A stretch of DNA of 62,966 nucleotides, the filler included, from Guillardia theta CCMP2712 (lineage: Eukaryota > Protista > Cryptophyta), in NCBI RefSeq assembly GCF_000315625.1. It is 6 parts of 6 records of this genome, joined end to end, with 100 filler letters (N's around TTAATTAATTAA, not from the genome) between each part and the next. Parts side by side here need not be neighbours in the genome. Positions count along the whole stretch, not along the records: positions 52,222 to 61,421 come from NW_005434602.1; 5 more parts are not named here. One strand, 5' to 3'. Position 1 is the first letter of the stretch. Every line of letters begins with the position of its first letter. A program made the position numbers and the translations under genes. Of this stretch, positions 326 to 61,388 are shown piece after piece. The notes below the pieces were generated by a model. The model saw only the letters and a program-made list of their open reading frames with translations, made no database searches and was not told where the DNA came from.

Positions 326-1674
326 TCAAGAAAGCAGGAGGGAGAAGGTTTTTATGTCGCACATCAAAAAGTTCCCAGCATCGACCTGGTATTGTGTGAT
401 CAGAATCATATCACAATGATTTGTCTTGTTACCAAAGAAGTTGGAGAAACTATCACTCTGTGCTGAGATTTGCACCTTGGGCAAAGTCACGAGATTAGCA
501 CTTGTATGATCAGATGCATTTATCATCAGATGTAATGTGATCTATTCATAATTGGACACATGTATCAACACTGGCGTACATGATAACAAGCATACATCAT
601 ATGATGCATGTTCCATCAGAACAAACTTCCTCTAACTGCTGCTGACCTGCTCTCGAAGTTTTTGCTCCTCCTCAAAGGCGGCTTTGGGAATCCAACATTT
701 TGAAATGAGTTCACAGGCTGATCGCAAAGTTAGCATGTCGTTAAGAGTTGTCATATTGTAATCTACTCACTGATCACTTCTGACAAGTGCAACATCTTTC
801 CAGATGGACTGCATACGAACAAGTGAGCACAGAAGAACAATGCAATATGAAGACTTCATCTACCTTCTTTCGTCATCTGCGTTCTTCTTGGCTGCAAACA
901 TGTGCAACATGCTCTGTTGAGAACAATCAGCTACGTTTCTCATCTTCTGTTTGGCTACCGCGTGGAGATTCTTCATGTCTTCAATGCTCAACCTGTTCTC
1001 TGTTGATTTTGCAGCCTGCACTTTGGTCTTCTTGTCTTTGACCTTGCCCTGAACAATGATTGTGATGACATCAGAACACAATTGAGTGCTTGTCTTACCT
1101 TCTTGTCAGATTTCTTTTCAGATTTCTTGTCTGATGTGAAGAACTTTTTGACGTCTTCTTCAAGGTATCCTTTCATGCAAGAGTCAGACAACAATCGAAA
1201 AAGGATTCGAACAATTGAAAGAGATTGAAAAACAACTGTTGTTACCGATGATCATGGTTTGACAACCATGCTCTACAGTGTTGACGCTCTGTTATGTTTC
1301 GTCAGTTCTGAATGTGTATATCTTTCAGTTCTTCTTGCAGTTCTCACCTTCTTCAGCTCTTTTCTCCAGCATCTCCATCTCCATCTTCATCTTCAACCTC
1401 ATCATCCAACCAGTGGATCCTTTCTATCGCAGCCTTCTGCTGGGCTACAAACAATTCGTCGACACGTTCCTTTGCCATGGTTATGATCTCGTTCAGAGGT
1501 CGATTTCCCTTCTCGTGCTGCTTCGCAATCTTTGTAGATGTAAATCTCACATCCTGATTGCCGTGATGTTCCTACCTGATCGAGAAGTTTCACTGACGCT
1601 TGTCGGAGCCTGTCAAGATTGTCAAGGACACACTGAAAAGAAGAAAGAAATTGAATTGAAGTGAGAATGATAAC

Positions 1675-1724
<50 letters not shown>

Positions 1725-2558
1725 CAAGATCGATGATGAGAGTGATGCTGGAGACGATGAGGAGTAGGAGTAGGAGCAGAAGGAAGAGGATTAGGTTGGG
1801 GAATAGGTGCATGAAAATAAAACACGACGATGATTGTAATGTCAATCATTTTCAAATTCATCAACTCACCTTTCTATGTATGCGGCGATTGTTTCATCTC
1901 GTCTCTGCAAAAACTTGTTACGCGCAGAAGCAGAAATGAAATTTGCAATGACAACTTGAAGTATTGTCGGAATCGTCGTTGTTGGTTGACTTGTAGTTTG
2001 AACATGTAGTAATGTGTCAAGTAGCTGCAAGCACCACAAAAATCATTCGAGAGAAAAGGAAGACGATCAGAAAACTTGAAAAAGTTGTAAATGAAACTCG
2101 AACATGCAGAAACTTTGCAATGACAATCGGCGAGCAACATAATGAATACAACAAACCATATCACGACAGCAGCAATACAATGGATAACACTTACCATCTG
2201 TCTTCTTTCCTCCTCTTCATACTTTACGATTGCGATTTTCTCTTCCATGTCTGAATTTGCCTCAACTTGCACTCTCTGCCAAATCTCATCAACCCGAGAA
2301 ATAATGTCCTAATTGTTTGTAACAGTTGTGTTCTTACCTGTTTCATGTAGTTTCTCTGCATCTCTTCTGAGTTTGCTGACATCTAAACCAGATTGTCATA
2401 TCGTCACACATGCTAACAAAGATTGACATGTTGTTGTTCACCTTCTTTCTAGCATTCTCTCTGTTCTTTTCATTTTCAAGTTTCCGTTCTGCCGCATGCG
2501 CTCGTCTAGAAGACACCTGTGATCAGCAACATGCTGCTTCTCCTCCATCTGCCCATTC

Positions 2559-2596
<38 letters not shown>

Positions 2597-2604
2597 CCAT
2601 CACC

Positions 2605-2650
<46 letters not shown>

Positions 2651-2660
2651 CAATTATTCG

Positions 2661-2711
<51 letters not shown>

Positions 2712-2717
2712 AAATAT

Positions 2718-2749
<32 letters not shown>

Positions 2750-4457
2750 GTATCAATTTGTTTGTTCAGGTCTTCTCCCATAACAAACATCCCATGGAAA
2801 CAAATCTATATCCTCACCTTGTCACCTCCTGCAGCAACCTCGACATGTTCTCTTCGCGCACATTTGCCTTCTCATACATATCACAACTTGGCGCATGAGA
2901 CGAGATCAGCTCGCCTTTGCCAGAGCATCTTGCAAAGATGTAATCTGCAAACAAATGTCGATCAGTGATAATTCATCTTCATCTCATTTCTGCACCTCTT
3001 CTCGCTGACTTTGCACTTTTTTCCTGTCCTCTTTTGTTCAACATGTCAAGATTTGCGATGTTGTTGTCAATATCAATTCACCTCTCGACGAATCTGCTTC
3101 TTTTTTAGCTCGTTGACCTGCAGTGAAGAAAATGAACAAAACTATGTCATGTCATGTCATGTCATGTCATGTCATGTCATGTCATGTCATGTCATCTCAT
3201 CTCATGTCATAACAAGGTCGAAGCTGAGTACAAACAAACCTGAGCAGCAAGTTGTTCGATCCTCATAATCCTTACAATCTCTCTGGCCTGATGGTAAACA
3301 TGAATTGACAGTCTTGACATGTCAAAAGTTTCACCTTTGCATTGCGAATAGATCGATCTCTTTCCTTCTCCGCCTGCTCAACCTGACGCTCGCACCTGGA
3401 AACCTTGAGAAGGCAGTAGGAAGAGAGGAGAGGAGAGGAGAGGAGAGGAGAGGAGAGGGAGGAGGAGGGAGGAGGAGGAGGAGGAGGAGGGAGGAGGAGG
3501 AGGAGGAGGAGAGGAGAGGAGAGGAGAGGAGAGGAGAGGAGGGGAGAGGGGAGGGGAGGAGGGAGGAGGAGGAGGAGGAGAAAGGAACGAGAGGAAAGAG
3601 ACGAGGGGAGGAGGAAGGGTGTGCAGGATGCACTTACCAGCTCCATCAGCTCATGCTCAAGGACAAGTTTCTGCAAGGAGTCAGATAGGCAAGAGGAAGC
3701 CCGAGGAGGAGGAGAAGGAAGAAGTGGTGGTGGGGTTTGAGGAGGAGCAGGAGGCTTTACTTCTTCTTGTTCCTTCAGTCGCCTCCTCTGCTGCTCGATC
3801 TCCGCTGCCGTCTGCTCCCTCGCGTCAAGTAGCTCCCAGCCTTCACTGTCCTCACCTTCTTCTGCTGCAGGTATCTCTCCTCCTCCTCCCGCACCTGCCC
3901 CTCATTCTCACCACTAGCCTCCACAACCTCTGCCACCTGCTCAAAGAGCGACGCGAGATGTCCGACCGATGCCTTGGGGAAGTTGGCGAGCAGTGGGTAG
4001 GCGCCTCCACCTCCCCTCTTCTCGAGGAACACTCTCTCCTTCTCTGCTCGCTCCTCCTCCTCCTCTCCCACGCTCGACTGCATCTGAAAGCTCGTTATCC
4101 TCGCCTGCGTCTGCCTGCCTGCCTGCACCTGTCGGAGCATGCGAGCGAATCGAAGGTCTCCCGCGATCGAGCAAGCAGAAACAACGACCGCCTGCTCCTC
4201 CCCGTCAGCTCCTCCGACCTTCATCACAACTCTGCCTCGCCCCCCCCCCCCCTNNNNNNNNNNNNNNNNNNNNNNNNNNNNNNNNNNNNNNNNNNNNNNN
4301 NNNNNNNNNNNNNNNNNNNNNNNNNNNNNNNNNNNNNNNNNNNNNNNNNNNNNTCCTCCTCATCTCTTTCCTTCACCTCAAGATCCCGCGGGTCCGCTGG
4401 TCCATGTCCTAAAATCATCGTACTAGAGGGAGTGAGAAGGAAACAAAATCAACTGAA

Positions 4458-52121: not shown

Positions 52122-52298
52122 NNNNNNNNNNNNNNNNNNNNNNNNNNNNNNNNNNNNNNNNNNNNTTAATTAATTAANNNNNNNNNNNNNNNNNNNNNNN
52201 NNNNNNNNNNNNNNNNNNNNNACATCCTCGTGCTCCTGCTCTTCCTCCTCCTTCTCCTGCTTCTCCTTCTGCTCATGCTCCCACTTCTCTCGCGTCAT

Positions 52299-52340
<42 letters not shown>

Positions 52341-52489
52341 ATGCTCCTGCTCCTGCTCTTGCTGCTCCTACTCCTCTCGCTCATCCTGCTGCTGCTGCTG
52401 TGCTGCTGCTGCTCTCGCTACTCTTGCTGCTGTGCTGCGGCTGTGCTGCTGCTGCTGATCTTCCACGTTCTCGTCCTCCTCTTGCTCAC

Positions 52490-54187
<1,698 letters not shown>

Positions 54188-54405
54188 GCCCACCTCGCTC
54201 TCCCGGTCTTTTCTCTTCTTCTCTCCTTCGCTCCTTCTCTCCTTCTCTTCTCCTTCTCTTCTCCTTCTCTTCTCCTTCTCTTCTCCTTCTCTTCTCCTTC
54301 TCTTCTCCTTCTCTTCTCCTCCCTCTTGTTTCCACTGAACTCAAAGATTCCGTTGACCCTCATCCCCACCACATCCACATTTTGTTTTACAAGCTTTTTT
54401 TAGCC

Positions 54406-56082
54406 ATGGGATGGCAGCGACTGCTCCTCCTCTACTTGGCCTGCTTGGTCCTCCCGCCCTCCTCCTCGTCATCCTCCTCCTCGCCCTCCTCCTCGTCCTC
54501 CTCCTCCTCCTCCTCCTCCTCCTCCTCTCCCCACTCGTCGTTGACTCAAGCTGCTCCTTCCTCGCTTTCTGCTTCCAATTCATCGCCAATCCTCTCGCAC
54601 GCTTCGTCCACCTCCATTCACGCTCTGTGGCCGGCCAATGGAACAAGACTGCTTCCTGCCTTACCTGTCACGTTGCGGTATGTGGTGAGGCATGCCGAGC
54701 TGGTGGGGCGGTATCAGCTGCTCGTCCTCGTCGACGGGGTCGAATGGGCTCACTCGTGGCTGCATGTCGTGAGTCAGGTCGAGCAGGCAGGGAACGTCAC
54801 TCTCCCGCCGATGCGAGAAGGAGAGCACGAGGTCATGCTCGCCTTGCAGCTTGAGTGGGAAGACATCAACCAGCCTTCCTCCATCGAACTCCTCCAGGTG
54901 CTCGTCCACGGAGAGCATGAGCGAAGAGATGAGGGGAACGCCCCTGGCCTGCAAGGGTGGAGGAGGAAACTGCAGTTTGAGCCTCGAGATGGGCTGGAGG
55001 AGAAAGGATGGCAGTCTGCTGGTTTCTATCAGTCCAAGGAGGCAGACGGGAAGGAGAATGTGCTTGTGCTTGTGGTTGCCAACGAGGGGTATAAGGACCT
55101 GCTCCAGCATTGGATCTGCCATGCGGATCGTCTGGGGCTCAAGTACATGGTCGGGCTGGCTGACCCTCAGATAGGAAGATGGATGGAGGAGCATCACCCC
55201 AAGGTTCGGACGCACGTGCTGTTCGAGGGGCGAGCATGTCGGAGGAAGGCTCGTTCATGAGCGAGATCTTCTACCGCATCGTGTGGCGGTGCATGGAGCT
55301 GGTGCGAGAGCTCTTGGATCGCAGCCTCTCCGTCCTCTTCATTGACATCGACGTCATGCTCCTCCGCGACCCCGTCGACTTGGTGGAGCACAACTGCGAC
55401 CTGGTCTACCAGCAGAACCACTGCGCCGAGATCCCTCCGAGAGAGGCGACGGAGGAGGGGGAGCCGAACGCTGGATTCTACTTCGTGCGGGCAGGACAAG
55501 CAGGCAAGCGCTTCCTGGACGAGGTGCTGCAGGGCAAGGTGCCTCCTCCTCCAGGTGACGTCAGGCACAACAAGAATCGATTCTACTCCCACGACCAGCG
55601 AGTGCAGGTGAGAGGCAGGAGCAGGGGAGCGGCGAAGAAGCAAAAGCAAGGGAGGGGGGAGCGAAGAAAGCAGCAGGGGAGGGAGCGGGAGAGGAGAGGG
55701 GCAGGACGGGATCAAATGATGGTGAGGAGCAGATTCACTTCTGGAATCGCCTTCGGGCTTGGCTGGCGGAGGGGCGAGCGCGACTGGCTCAGGTGCCCCG
55801 GCAACGCTACGAGCATCGCGACTTGTCGCCCTCCAAGTTCTGCGCAGCTGACGCGCGTGCGTACGCAACTGGCTGGGCGTTGGACAGGTGAAGGAAGCGA
55901 GGAGAAGGAAAGAGACTGAGCAGAACACAGAGAAAGGTTCGAGCAGGTGAACTCTTCCATCGTAGCTCTTCACGCGAACTGCATCATAGGCAAGTCGAAG
56001 AAGGTGAGAAGAATCTGCGAGGGTTGGAATGACAAGCGCACAGGTTGAGCTCATGAGGTCGCTGGGGGTTCTCTGTTTCTGA
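54406..56082 (+). CDS. Nucleotide-diphospho-sugar transferase (GT77/Nucleotid_trans-like) with an apparent 1-nt frameshift near 55230
   Basis: Signal/anchor MGWQRLLLLYLACLVL; VVANEGYKDLLQHWICH; VLFIDIDVMLLRDP (DxD); PNAGFYFVR; DQ; HANCIIGKSKK. Confidence 0.8.
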
Positions 56083-56359: not shown

Positions 56360-56820
56360 CCTTACAGGCAATACCCGTAGGCGTCCGACTGACCGTTAGA
56401 GCTGGCGTGTGCCGACTCGACACCCTCCGCTTCACTGTCTGGTATCTGGCGCAAGACAATGGCATTGCCTTGCTTCTTCCTGCTTTCTTCTGCTTGAGGC
56501 TCCTGTTGTCTTGTGTGTTTGCACCGCCTTTGTTCCTCATGCATGACTAGGTGAGTTTTACTCGCACAAGGTAAAACTTCAAGTGCCTCCAGCAGAAGAA
56601 GCAGAGACAAGCAAGACCGTCCTGCTTTCTTCTGCTTGAGGCACTTTTTAAAGCCTAGAGTTCTACTCGCATAAGGTTAAAAGTGCTTTTTACCTTGTGC
56701 GAGTGCTCAGAGGTATACTCGCAGAAGGTAAAAAGTGTCTCAAGCAAAAGATTGTTCCTGCTTTCTTTTTGCTTGCTTGTCTGCGCGGCTTTGCGCTTGG
56801 GCTGGCGATGCCGGGTCTGC
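56360..56820. mobile_element. Older, diverged fragments of a related RLE-element subfamily (terminus ...TTTTTACCTTxTGCGAGT)
   Basis: Matches to ORF (CACCCTCCGCTTCA..TCTGGTATCT) and 3' UTR modules; tail-to-tail termini form an inverted repeat at ~56685-56735. Confidence 0.65.
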
Positions 56821-59337
56821 CAGCAGTGGCTCGTCCAGCATGGCTTCATGTTCAAGACGCTGGTGAGGGCGAGCCATCTCCAGAAGCTGCGCTTCTTCCT
56901 CCAGGGGTCATCTCCGTTTCTCCCGCGGGTCCAGTCACAGATTCGTCGCTTTGACCTCTCTGTCCACCTGGCGCTTGAGAAATACCACCGCTGGCCTTCC
57001 TCGCAGTACCTCGCCGCGCATCCCGACCTGCTAGAGTTTGCGAGGTTCAAGCGGGAGCTTCCGCATAGTCGGGGAGGGGACGAGTTCACGCCCTCTGAGG
57101 GTCTACACCCCGCTGTTTACTATACGGCTATCGCTCGCTTCCTCGCTTGGTACTCTGACCAGCCCATGTCCCGGATGTTGCCCTCTCCTCATAGCCTGGA
57201 CGTTCACTGCTCGAGATCTCTCCGTGCCCAGAAGCATCCTCTGGCGACCTTCTTCGTTGAGGCGCACGACTTCGTTCATAATGCTGGAGCGATCCTCTAC
57301 CGTCGTGTGAAGGCTCCTGCACCGGCTGCAGATGGCGCGGCGATCCCACCTGCCCCGGCTGCTGTGCCTGATGACGCAGGACGCCCCCCGGCATCTGTGG
57401 TACACATCCCTGGTTTGCGCGCTCTCGTCGACTCGTCTCATGAGCACTTCATTCCTCCGCCTGCGCAGCGAAATGTGACCCCTCTTGTCATGCGCGTCTT
57501 CCCTCGCCATGTGCATGCTCGCGCTGCGCTGACCGATCAGCAGCGTGATATCCTCACCTTGCACAGCCGCAGGACACACTCGCTCAAGTCGCAGGATAGG
57601 GTCTTGCAGTCTACCATCTTCGCTCATTTTCCTGAGCGAGACCTGAGCCACTCTCCGATGCGAGTCTCGAGCTACTACCCCCTCAAGGCCTTCCCGCACC
57701 GCTATGCTCAGATGCTCGACTGCTATCTCCATGGCATGCCGATCTGCCAGTGTCCGACGGAATGTGATGGATGTCAGCGCGAGCTCGATCCCTCCGTTGC
57801 TGCACATCATCTCCAGACCTGCAAACGCCGATCCTCCAAGCTTCCCACGGCGCATGACAACCTTACTCGTACGATTCGGTCGATGCTGAACGAAGCTGGT
57901 CTTCAGAGCGTCATCGATACAGTGGGGGATCCTCGTTCTCGACGGCAGGTACCCTCCCATCCTCATGGCCGCAAGATGAAGGGCGATATCCACATCCCTG
58001 GAATCCGCGATCGAGGGTCCGAGCAGTACGAGGGCTTGATGGCGGACGTGACGTTGGTCCACCCTTACATTGGTAGCTCTGCCGACCTGACCAAGTGGGG
58101 GGAGGTCAACCTCGACGCCCTCCATGTTGCAGCGTCTGAGAAGATTCGCAAACATCGCGCTGCATATGCTATGACTACTCCTCCTCGAGCGTTCATCCCT
58201 CTTGCCATCTCGACGGACGGTACCCTGCATCCTGACACCCTCCGCTTCATCTGGTATCTTGCGGACATCATTGCTCAGCGCTCAATGCCTCTTGAGGATG
58301 CGGCGTTTGGTCGGCACTTCGTGCCTGATGACGGACCTGCTGCTGAGGTCTTGGCTCGCAAACGCGCCGCCACCTATCAGCGCCTCACTATGCAGCTGAC
58401 GCTGGAGGCGCTCTTGTCTGGTGCGAGGCGCATGACGCCCTTGCGGGCGCAAGCACTCCTCGAGCCAGAGGACAGCTCCTCCTCGGACTTTGTCGAGTCG
58501 CCCGAGGAGTCTTCGCCGGAGGTCTCCGACTCCGATGGGGGAAACCCTTCGAGTGGCCCCGACGATGGGCGCGGAGCTGGCGACTCGGAGGCGTCTCCGT
58601 CCCTCACTGTGACGTCGGGTGCCTCCGGAGAGCTCGACACCACTGGGGTGCTTGCTGCTGGTCCGAGCTCGCCTGCTTCCTCCCCGGCATCGGTCGGGTC
58701 ACGCCGGTCCTTGGGCATTGCCGCGGCGTCGCCGCCGTCACGGGCGGCTACCGCTGACTCGGCTACCGCTGACTCGGAGGCTAGCGAGGAGGACTACCTC
58801 GAGCGGTACCGTGTTCATGTGTCCAGCCTCCCTCGGTTTAGCTTGTTCCTGCTTTGTTTTGCTTGAGGCACTTTTTACCTTCTGCCAGTAAATCCTATAC
58901 ATGTTTTCTCCGTCCGCTGCCCCAGGCGGACCCCCGGGCATCGCCGGCTCCTTGTCGGCGGCTGCCCTTTCTCCGTCCGCGGCCGCCCGCTTTGTGGCGG
59001 CAGCGGACGTCTCGACTGACAGTGGTCAGTCGGCTGCCTCCGGGTATCGCGTGTAAGGGATTTTCTTCCTCCTGCATGCTCCTGCTGCTTGTTGCTTGAT
59101 TGCCTGACCCTGAGTGATCGGATTTACTGGCAGAAGGTAAAAAGCCTTAGGCTGCTTGTCTGCGCGGCTTCGCGCTTGGGCTGGCGATGCCGCGTCTGGG
59201 TGCCAGCAGTGCTGGTTGTTTTCGGGCTTGTGTTTTGTGTGTGTTTGTGCAGCTTTCTCGCTGTGGACTGTGTGGTTCAGCTTGTTCCTGCTTTATTTTG
59301 CTTGAGGCACTTTTTACCTTCTGCCAGTAAATCCTAT
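56820..59337 (+). mobile_element. 5'-truncated CRE-like non-LTR retrotransposon (CCHC knuckle plus restriction-like endonuclease); true stop 59054-59056, 3' UTR ending ...GCCAGTAAATCCTAT
   Basis: CDGC...HHLQTC...AHDNL...KMKGDI...LMADVTLVHP...AASEKIRKH...FIPLAISTDGTLHP. The uninterrupted 3' end is preserved as an inverted copy at 60912-61388, which shows the ORF continues past the 58835-58907 insert. Confidence 0.85.
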
Positions 59338-61388
59338 GATCGCTGGTTCTTTTCGGGCTTGCATGCAGGTTTAGCTTGTTCCTGCTTTGTTTTGCTTGAG
59401 GCACTTTTTACCTTCTGCGAGTAAACCTCTGATCATCCAAGCTAAGACTGCATGCACACAGCTCTTCGGCCAGCCCACGCGCGAAGCCGCGCAGACAAGC
59501 AGGAAGGGCCAAGCAACAGTCTGTAGGAGGGTTGGAAGATTTACTGGCAGAAGGTAAAAAGGAGGGGACCCCTCGAGCGGTACCGTGCTCCTCCGCTTCA
59601 TCTGGTATCTGGCGGACATCATTGCTCAGCGGCGCTCGACGGCAAGCCTCGATGCCTCTTGAGGATGCGGCGTTTGGTCGGCACTTCGTGCCTGACGACG
59701 GCCCTGCTGCTGAGGTCTTGGCTCGCAAACGCGCCGCCACCAAGTGTATGGATTTACTGGCAGAAGGGAAAAAGTGCCTCAAGCAAAACAAAGCAAACAA
59801 GCCTATCAGCGCCTCACTATGCAGCTGACGCTGCAGGCGCTCTTGTCTGGTGCGAGGCGCATGACGCCCTTGCGGGCGCAAGCACTCCACGAGCCAGAGG
59901 ACAGCTCCTCCTCGGACTTTGTCGAGTCGCCCGAGGAGGGCATAGGATTTACTGGCAGAAGGTAAAAAGTGCCTCAAGCAAAACAAAGCAGGAACAAGCT
60001 GAACCGGCAGGCACACAGTCCACAGCGAGAAGCTGCACAAACACACACAAAACACAAGCCCGAAAAGAACCAGCACTGCTGGCACCCAGACGCGGCAGCG
60101 CCAGCCCAAGCGCGAAGCCGCGCAGACAAGCAGCCTAAGGGTCAAGCAATCAAGCAACAAGCAGCAGGAGGAATCTTTGCCGGCCCGGGAGGTCTCCGAC
60201 TTCATCTGGTATCTCGCGGACATCATTGCTCAGCGCTCGATGCCTCTTGAGGATGCGGCGTTTGGTCGGCACTTCGTGCCTGATGACGGACCTGATGCTG
60301 AGGTCTTGGCTCGCAAACGCGCCGCCACCTATCAGCGCCTCACCATGCAGCTGACGCTGGAGGCGCTCTTGTCTGGTGCGAGGCGCATGACGCCCTTGCG
60401 GGCGCAAGCACTCCTCGAGCCAGAGGACAGCTCCTCCTCGGACTTTGTCGAGTCGCCCGAGGCAACGGGGGCATAGGATTTACTGGCAGAAGGTAAAAAG
60501 TGCCTCAAGCAAAACAAAGCAGGAACAAGCTGAACCGGCAGGCACACAGTCCACAGCGAGAAGCTGCACAAACACACACAAAACACAAGCCCGAAAAGAA
60601 CCAGCACTGCTGTTACCTTCTGCCAGTAAATCCTGTAGGCTGGCACCCAGACGCGGCATCGCCAGCCCAAGCGCGAAGCCGCGCAGACAAGCAGCCTAAG
60701 GGTCAAGCAATCAAGCAACAAGCAGCAGGAGCATGCAGGAGGAAGAAAATCCCTTACACGCGATACCCGGAGGCAGCCGACTGACCACTGTCAGTCGAGA
60801 CGTCCGCTGCCGGCACAAAGCGGGCGGCCGCGGACGGAGAAAGGGCAGCCGCCGACAAGGAGCCGGCGTTGCCCGGGGGTCCGCCTGGGGCAGCGGACGG
60901 AGGGAGGCTGTATAGGATTTACTGGCAGAAGGTAAAAAGTGCCTCAAGCAAAATAAAGCAGGAACAAGCTGAACCGGCAGGCACACAGCACACAGCGAGA
61001 AGCTGCACAAACACACACAAAAAACACAAGCCCGAAAAGAACCAGCACTGCTGGCACCCAGACGCGGCAGCGCCAGCCCAAGCGCGAAGCCGCGCAGACA
61101 AGCAGCCTAAAGGTCAAGCAATCAAGCAACAAGCAGCAGGAGCATGCAGGAGGAAGAAAATCCCTTACACGCGATACCCGGAGGCAGCCGACTGACCACT
61201 GTCAGTCGAGACGTCCGCTGCCGCCACAAAGCGGGCGGCCGCGGACGGAGAAAGGGCAGCCGCCGACAAGGAGCCGGCGCTGCCCGGGGGTCCGCCTGGG
61301 GCAGCGGACGGAGGGAGGCTGGACACATGAACACGGTACCGCTCGAGGTAGTCCTCCTCGCTAGCCTCCGAGTCAGCGGTAGCCGAGT
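59338..61388. mobile_element. Nest of 3'-anchored, 5'-truncated fragments of the same RLE element in both orientations
   Basis: Element terminus (or a variant of it) recurs at ~59368, 59538, 59750, 59942, 60473, 60613 and 60912, joined to pieces of ORF 58235-58508 and the 3' UTR. Confidence 0.85.

Follow-up and report, generated by a model that had tools for sequence, protein, structure and literature searches.

To our knowledge, the known retrotransposons without long terminal repeats (non-LTR) that encode a restriction-like endonuclease (RLE) read their target through N-terminal DNA-binding domains. These RLE-type long interspersed nuclear elements (LINEs) serve as the model system of site-specific target-primed reverse transcription (TPRT). 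Their usual target is a single site within a multicopy host gene or a microsatellite (PMC4640811), and one of them, R2, is now engineered for gene insertion (PMC11331408); GilM and GilT of Giardia belong to the CRE clade by their reverse transcriptase (RT) (PMC10088271). Self-nesting has been described elsewhere: Zepp, a member of the L1 clade, and Zepp-like L1 elements of green algae are presented, in the passage of PMC8226300 that cites Higashiyama 1997, as forming clusters of mostly 3' ends through nested self-insertion and 5' truncation, and Cnl1 of Cryptococcus inserts preferentially within itself, giving nested arrays of mostly 5'-truncated copies (PMC9942834). Here, we analysed a stretch of 62,966 nucleotides from the cryptophyte Guillardia theta CCMP2712 (the whole stretch is called the window), in which positions 56360-61388 form a nest of one non-LTR retrotransposon family. 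The nest was delimited by self-BLAST and by mapping onto a 4220-nt reference element (ref), stitched from natural segments, namely positions 1-1816 of the contig L001 and the window copy minus two insertions. Host DNA lies to the left of 56360, and non-element flank follows from 61389 onward. On our reading, this nest is one of many islands in the G. theta nuclear genome built by a single self-nesting RLE family through TPRT into its own copies, a reading to which we assign, as a whole, a probability of roughly 0.68.

The family is held together by its 3' terminus. The constant end reads ...CTGCCAGTAAATCC (...AAATCC) and is followed by three more bases; the terminus core of the family is CTTCTGCCAGTAAATC. 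The 16-mer core of this terminus occurs 69 times in ~115 kb from seven sources, far beyond chance, on fragments of 15 to >1300 nt (median 60 nt), 36 of which measure at most 70 nt. Across these 69 termini the copies are common in their 3' end, variable in their 5' end and without LTRs or terminal inverted repeats (TIRs). A sequence-only reading of the locus had proposed very short complementary DNAs (cDNAs), anchored at the 3' end, truncated at the 5' end and accompanied by small duplications and extra 3' bases, and the 69 cases bear this out. Its claim of a fixed end stands as far as ...AAATCC, but the next three bases vary by subfamily (TAT, ATT, ACT, GTA, ATC). TAT pairs with a TTCAGC variant of the terminus and ATT, ATC, ACT and GTA with a TTTAGC variant; because the three bases track the subfamily, they are probably templated. 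The 1-9 further G-poor bases that come after this triplet look untemplated.

Self-BLAST and mapping onto the reference recovered every feature that had been listed for the nest, which is composed as follows (window coordinates, strand):

56360-56451 (both orientations): left edge of the nest, old diverged pieces read from the sequence: first an inverted piece of about ref 3975-3930, then a direct one of ref 3217-3252
56452-56827 (both orientations): patchwork of very short terminus-like pieces, from self-BLAST and reference mapping, with pieces at 56620-56650 (+), 56716-56749 (-) and 56749-56775 (+) and also variant CTGCGAGTA-type motifs
56774-56819: fragment of the 3' untranslated region (UTR; ref 4036-4081) inside the patchwork
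56828-59337 (+): main copy (ref 1817-4220), 5'-truncated, with its start just past the RT, from the segment map
58835-58907 (+): insertion 1, which disrupts the open reading frame (ORF): the last 64 nt of the element (ref 4157-4220) followed by filler ACATGTTTT, with a duplication of CTC
59112-59144 (-): insertion 2, inverted: 25-28 nt of terminus and filler, with a duplication of CCT
59338-59589 (mixed strands): scrambled short pieces 3' of the main copy, from reference mapping: ref 4094-4113 (+), a variant terminus at 59368-59432 (+), ref 4068-4035 (-), a 24-nt terminus at 59538-59561 (-) and ref 3775-3802 (+)
59590-59938 (+): ORF fragment (ref 3228-3498), bearing insertion 3
59742-59801 (-): insertion 3, inverted: 52-58 nt of terminus and filler, with a duplication of CC
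59942-60170 (-): inverted 3' fragment (ref 4220-3995), its terminus joined via filler GGC to ORF position ref 3498
60194-60462 (+): second ORF fragment (ref 3229-3496)
60473-60907 (-): inverted copy (ref 4220-3820), bearing insertion 4
60613-60638 (+): insertion 4: 20-25 nt of terminus followed by GTAG, with a duplication of GCTG
60912-61388 (-): inverted, uninterrupted 5'-truncated copy (ref 4220-3746), which defines the intact 3' end
58898, 59337 and 60637: ends of the + termini, with a variant ending at 59432
59117, 59538, 59745, 59942, 60473 and 60912: starts of the - termini

Exactly ten terminus junctions map in the cluster, where about ten had been counted before, and each joins 20-473 nt of upstream element sequence. 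The four clean insertions, claimed with duplications of 2-4 bp and extra bases at the 3' junction, were each verified base by base against uninterrupted copies; the uninterrupted state of the insertion 1 site, for instance, is present in the copy at 60912-61388. That copy also sets the intact 3' end, as had been stated: it covers ref 4220-3746 and ends ...CTGCCAGTAAATCCTAT, with neither an A-run at the terminus nor a poly(A) tail. From 56828 onward the main copy is 99.4% identical to the RT-bearing contig L001, and insertions 1 and 2 interrupt it. Its ORF starts at the ATG at 56848 and originally stopped at a TAA near 59054; it now spans 56848-58833. The left-edge fragment gives a weak BLAST match at 56419-56451 (88% identity). 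The terminus junction of the second ORF fragment lies 2 nt from the junction at 59938, and because the fillers of the two differ, the events were either independent or have diverged after duplication. Positions 56477-56607 form a hairpin-forming region with sub-threshold matches to Rfam microRNA (miRNA) families; the hairpins are short inverted terminus-like pieces, and the matches are probably meaningless. Inverted terminus motifs at 56540-56760 had suggested a TIR- or DIRS-type element, which we rejected as the motifs are short inverted insertions and the RT/RLE architecture is clear. A resemblance of the inverted terminus to the 5' end of U1 small nuclear RNA was considered and dropped.

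The scrambled architecture recurs beyond the window. Five further G. theta scaffold regions (L002-L006) were fetched via the element proteins and joined by the independent MEGAHIT contig L001; all five scaffolds and the contig are scrambled in the same way, and the ORF of L001 holds two short terminus pieces. At L004 11014-16415, six or seven short terminus inserts interrupt a near full-length copy, each oriented as that copy is. These recurrences bear on whether misassembly of a high-copy repeat has produced the nest. Logan unitigs break at repeats, no independent contig spans the window nest, and the nest in L006 includes an N gap. However, insertions of 25-73 bp with their duplications should fit within one Sanger read, and the same junction types are found in contig L001, in the five scaffolds and in two other DNA runs, where many further terminus-to-internal joints with short fillers occur. 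The chance of an artefact appears close to negligible. Contigs L001, L007 and L008 come from assemblies filed as metagenomes (ENA ERZ930071 / ERZ930064), and their DNA is 99-100% identical to G. theta nuclear elements, which indicates that Guillardia or a very close strain was present in those samples. Metagenome scans for the terminus gave no match with a 25-mer and, with a 20-mer, four chance matches in unrelated contigs.

Across the loci, a base-by-base check confirmed 18 clean insertions into an otherwise continuous copy, 12 co-oriented with the host copy and six inverted, with duplications of 1-8 bp and once of 16 bp. R2 RT performs end-to-end template jumping with untemplated additions, and much of the scramble might stem from such jumping and from later recombination, rather than from targeted nicking. 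A single TPRT event would yield a chimeric cDNA, the RT passing from the 5' end of one broken RNA to the 3' end of the next with a few bases added per jump, and unequal recombination and repair would then rearrange the pieces. Many junctions have the expected head-to-tail form, in which the terminus and 1-9 extra bases are followed by a co-oriented 5'-truncated copy (38 of 61 downstream flanks are co-oriented), and internal fragments lacking a terminus anchor are also present. By contrast, template jumping does not produce insertions that interrupt continuous copies between duplications, as the 18 do; 23 junctions are inverted, including the six clean ones; and when the co-oriented junctions are left out, all remaining events still lie in element DNA. 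That template jumping and recombination account for much of the scramble we regard as distinctly unlikely. Templated repair insertions of the polymerase-theta type were rejected, since one and the same terminus anchors every insert.

The targets of these insertions point to a preference. We tabulated the flanks of 67 termini in six genomic loci totalling 110 kb, of which 41% is element DNA and in which two foreign transposable elements (TEs) also occur. Element DNA follows 59/67 termini, against 41% expected (binomial p 1.4e-15), and most of the remaining eight also sit inside nests. Element DNA carries ~1.5 termini per kb, whereas ~87 kb of non-element DNA (~65 kb of flanks and the 22 kb of L009), in which the foreign TEs and the sister family described below are counted, hold at most two. 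The preference for own copies proposed from the sequence is thus upheld. The two foreign TEs apart, the nests are nearly free of non-element DNA, which implies that their growth does not spill into adjacent host sequence.

Both foreign TEs lie in the nest of L005. One is an unrelated 1.5-kb element (L005:7806-9322) with 325-bp direct terminal repeats that are 100% identical, resembling an LTR element or a terminal-repeat retrotransposon in miniature; the other is an unrelated 2.4-kb element (L005:11654-14083) with terminal inverted repeats CATTACGTTCGCTT... / ...AAGCGAACGTAATG. Neither contains a terminus of the family studied here (family A). A sister RLE family, family B (L007, L008, L009:9068-13574; P0194, 1468 aa), shares 38% protein identity and has a different 3' end, and was on that ground rejected as the source of the variant CTGCGAGTA terminus. 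Its genomic copy in L009 is single, linear and unscrambled, and likewise free of the family-A terminus.

Within the element itself, targets are spread over ref 570-4220 and include hot spots: 14 same-orientation junction pairs fall within 2 nt of each other, against 1.8 expected under a uniform model, and events at an identical nucleotide differ in tail and length, for example at ref 4090 and ref 3958. Insertion 4 of the window lies at ref 4090, where L006 has an independent insertion (15330). Taken with the enrichment, the clean foreign TEs and the linear family B, these hot spots support a real preference of the family for its own DNA as insertion target, and not just tolerance of insertions there. 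If there were no preference, insertion would be random, with survival confined to dead element islands because the genome is gene-dense. Nests do adjoin genes (the window nest, for one, has a transferase gene and a DUF4200 gene on its left), and the nest of L005 has also received two unrelated TEs. Against this, inserts of 25-64 nt should often be tolerated in introns and spacers, yet termini in non-element DNA are as sparse as the counts above show; the nests contain no islands of host DNA, the sister family persists as a solitary copy, and hot spots recur at the identical nucleotide. Random insertion is therefore, in our judgement, very improbable.

Most inserts are short, and their 5' ends are not evenly placed. 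About 10 of the 45 fragments shorter than 120 nt begin at ref 4157 (window 58835 and 59274), and this pile-up gives a recurrent 60-64-nt unit, GGTT[T/C]AGC...AAATCC plus three bases, at many different targets. Minor peaks of 5' ends lie at ref 4193, 4180 and 4169. The last 64 nt of the element are conserved across subfamilies, and the sequence upstream of ref 4157 differs between them. The pile-up could mark a preferred stop of the RT or a discrete short template. In the latter case the shortest pieces would be full copies of such templates, for instance an RNA of the 64-nt 3' module that behaves as a mini non-autonomous element; that the 5' ends coincide at different targets and in three subfamily variants, and that conservation ends where the pile-up begins, speaks for this. 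On the other side, most 5' ends are scattered over all positions, neither a significant RNA structure nor a processing signal was detected, and no such RNA species appears in the RNA data (60 raw reads). We consider the mini-element doubtful. Neither the 3' UTR nor the 64-nt module folded better as RNA than shuffled sequences did, and an Rfam scan of the nest returned only sub-threshold noise from miRNA and long non-coding RNA families, with no match to ribosomal RNA (rRNA).

The ORF of the window copy encodes the C-terminal part of the element protein, and two features map to it:

57763-57822 (+): CCHC zinc knuckle (C-x2-C-x11-H-x3-C), from alignment A1, aligned with the R2 zinc knuckle
57853-58260 (+): predicted PD-(D/E)XK core, with AH(D/E) at H62, GD at D106, DxT..HP at D126/H131 and K..KH..Y at K158

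A word search found 37 relatives of this ORF; those of 64-100% identity are G. theta CCMP2712 gene models, which spread over about 30 scaffolds, and two ENA/JGI sequences, so that the nest is assigned to cryptophyte nuclear DNA. The window ORF alone has no Pfam match. Longer relatives (P0006, 947 aa; P0013; P0037) contain RVT_1 directly upstream of the region corresponding to the window ORF, at 27-33 bits and hence near the cut-off; the RT is missing from the window copy, whose 5' truncation at 56828 lies just past it. A profile of the RT region of 12 distant relatives (A2) matches solved R2 proteins best (E 3.8e-14), followed by L1 ORF2p (E 5e-7). Single-sequence phmmer of P0006 against the PDB was blank, so that profiles were needed. 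In an alignment of the C-terminal domain of 15 distant relatives (A1), C32, C35, H47 and C51 of the CCHC knuckle are at least 90% conserved, and the order C-x2-C...H...C, AH(D/E), GD, D-x-T..HP, K..KH..Y is retained, with D106, D126 and K158 kept. The A1 profile matches the R2 endonuclease region motif for motif (9nl3_A, 9dou_A; E about 1e-4). An AlphaFold2 model of the domain (predicted local distance difference test 81, predicted template modelling score 0.81) gave seven best Foldseek matches that are all R2 (R2Tg, R2Pm, R2Bm), followed by cap-snatching, MspJI and MunI PD-(D/E)XK nucleases. In line with the earlier assignment to the RLE elements, these profile and model matches support the prediction that the C-terminal domain is a PD-(D/E)XK restriction-like endonuclease of R2 type, and by its predicted RT, CCHC and RLE modules the family is a member of the RLE-encoding non-LTR group.

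The ORF is ordered as a short N-terminus, a LINE-type RT, the CCHC knuckle, the R2-type restriction-like endonuclease and an acidic, Ser-rich tail. Two long copies begin at ref 336-347, which suggests that the full element measures ~3.9 kb and has a single ORF. In P0006, the first 200 residues contain no Pfam domain, only two Cys, and no zinc finger or Myb domain; Pfam likewise detects no apurinic/apyrimidinic endonuclease (APE) domain in P0006 and P0013. An exhaustive search of representative sequences returned 757 relatives, mostly unnamed metagenomic proteins, and a feature search of the protein atlas returned unnamed clusters only. One metagenomic distant relative of the RT-RLE protein, P0092, carries an N-terminal ubiquitin C-terminal hydrolase (UCH) domain, which recalls the cysteine proteases of NeSL/Utopia.

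From these observations we infer that new copies arise via TPRT. The RLE would nick DNA, in nearly every case within a copy of the family that was already in place; the nicks would fall at many positions, among them recurrent hot spots and sites just beyond an existing terminus. The RT would begin at the fixed 3' end of the RNA (...AAATCC and the next three bases), in many cases once a few untemplated bases had been added. Synthesis would mostly end after 15-150 nt, frequently at ref 4157, where the conserved 64-nt 3' module has its upstream edge. Islands would grow from within, with old fragments at their edges and every long copy seen riddled with insertions. A more speculative extension, which we hold tentatively and think rather unlikely to be correct in full, is that this RLE element, lacking a DNA-binding N-terminus, finds its own DNA copies through homology, its RNA for example pairing with copy DNA and presenting it to the nuclease. 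The family would then be self-homing and self-destroying, with abortive inserts of 15-150 nt inactivating long copies and confining it to islands usable as heterochromatin or centromere seeds.

Several observations weigh against self-nesting by TPRT as we propose it. Neither a target-site logo of 53 junctions, which contains no target motif, nor the N-terminus, which has no zinc finger or Myb domain, offers a basis for the recognition step. The loci were found through element proteins, and solitary insertions in non-element DNA may exist elsewhere in the genome. Foreign TEs also sit in the nests, so tolerance of insertions plays some part. For the head-to-tail junctions, end-to-end template jumps are an equally good explanation, in which case the hot spots would be RNA 5' ends. 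Internal fragments without a terminus (e.g. 59342-59361, 59469-59502) are unexplained by simple nested insertion, and other rearrangements are needed. At the site of window insertion 1, an old copy in L005 (1932-2029) likewise contains a terminus fragment, which means that some junctions may be inherited and not new. The search for a full-length RT-containing copy, suggested with the original description, yielded RT-bearing relatives (P0006, P0013, contig L001) but no intact full-length copy among the loci sampled. Finally, the RNA support consists of 60 raw reads, too few to define the 3' end.

The window nest begins within a few hundred bases of a host gene for a nucleotide-diphospho-sugar transferase (PF03407). 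The features to its left are:

55179-55916 (+): exon of the PF03407 transferase gene
53657-54193 (-): DUF4200 coiled-coil gene
52222-52460 and 54200-54320: long CT/CTG-rich low-complexity runs

A family that has no DNA-binding N-terminal domain, yet inserts almost exclusively into itself and does so at many positions, points to a way of choosing targets other than the one on which the RLE model is built. The self-nesting, island-building lifestyle seen in APE-type Zepp and in Cnl1 would have arisen independently in an RLE lineage, in a cryptophyte. The short inserts are an extreme natural example of abortive reverse transcription. Insertions into own copies break up the family's own genes; should they limit the family as well, it would be a plain example of a transposon that limits itself, an idea on which the lack of an intact full-length copy in the sampled loci is the one observation that bears.

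How, then, does the Guillardia family compare with known systems? Like R2, NeSL/Utopia, CRE/SLACS, R4 and Genie/GilM/GilT, it combines RT, CCHC and PD-(D/E)XK in a single ORF without LTRs; it further resembles RLE elements in its 3'-anchored, 5'-truncated copies and extra 3'-junction bases, and its best sequence and fold matches are to R2. Unlike typical RLE elements, it targets many positions in its own sequence and shows no specificity for a host repeat, and it differs from R2, NeSL and Utopia (PMC4640811) in an N-terminus free of zinc finger and Myb domains. In sequence it lies very far from the known RLE elements. The R2 clade in the strict sense, marked by N-terminal zinc finger/Myb domains and a 28S rDNA target, does not fit the family, which lacks these domains and whose nest has no rRNA match. 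GilM and GilT form head-to-tail arrays and are telomere-associated, whereas no telomere repeat was seen in the Guillardia nests; we know of no report of short intra-element insertions with duplications for GilM or GilT. With Zepp, which has an APE nuclease and a poly(A) tail, the family shares self-nesting clusters in a unicellular alga. It differs from Zepp in having an RLE and no APE domain, no poly(A), far shorter fragments (median 60 nt) and insertions in both orientations, and its copies lie on at least 30 scaffolds, with no evident restriction to one cluster per chromosome. Cnl1 arrays are tandem and subtelomeric, whereas the Guillardia nests are internal to gene-dense scaffolds, mixed in orientation and built of inserts that mostly measure tens of bases. 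Self-nesting is thus already known from Zepp and Cnl1, and the Guillardia family is an RLE version of this known behaviour; our literature search, which did not extend to Repbase, found no earlier account of Guillardia non-LTR elements.

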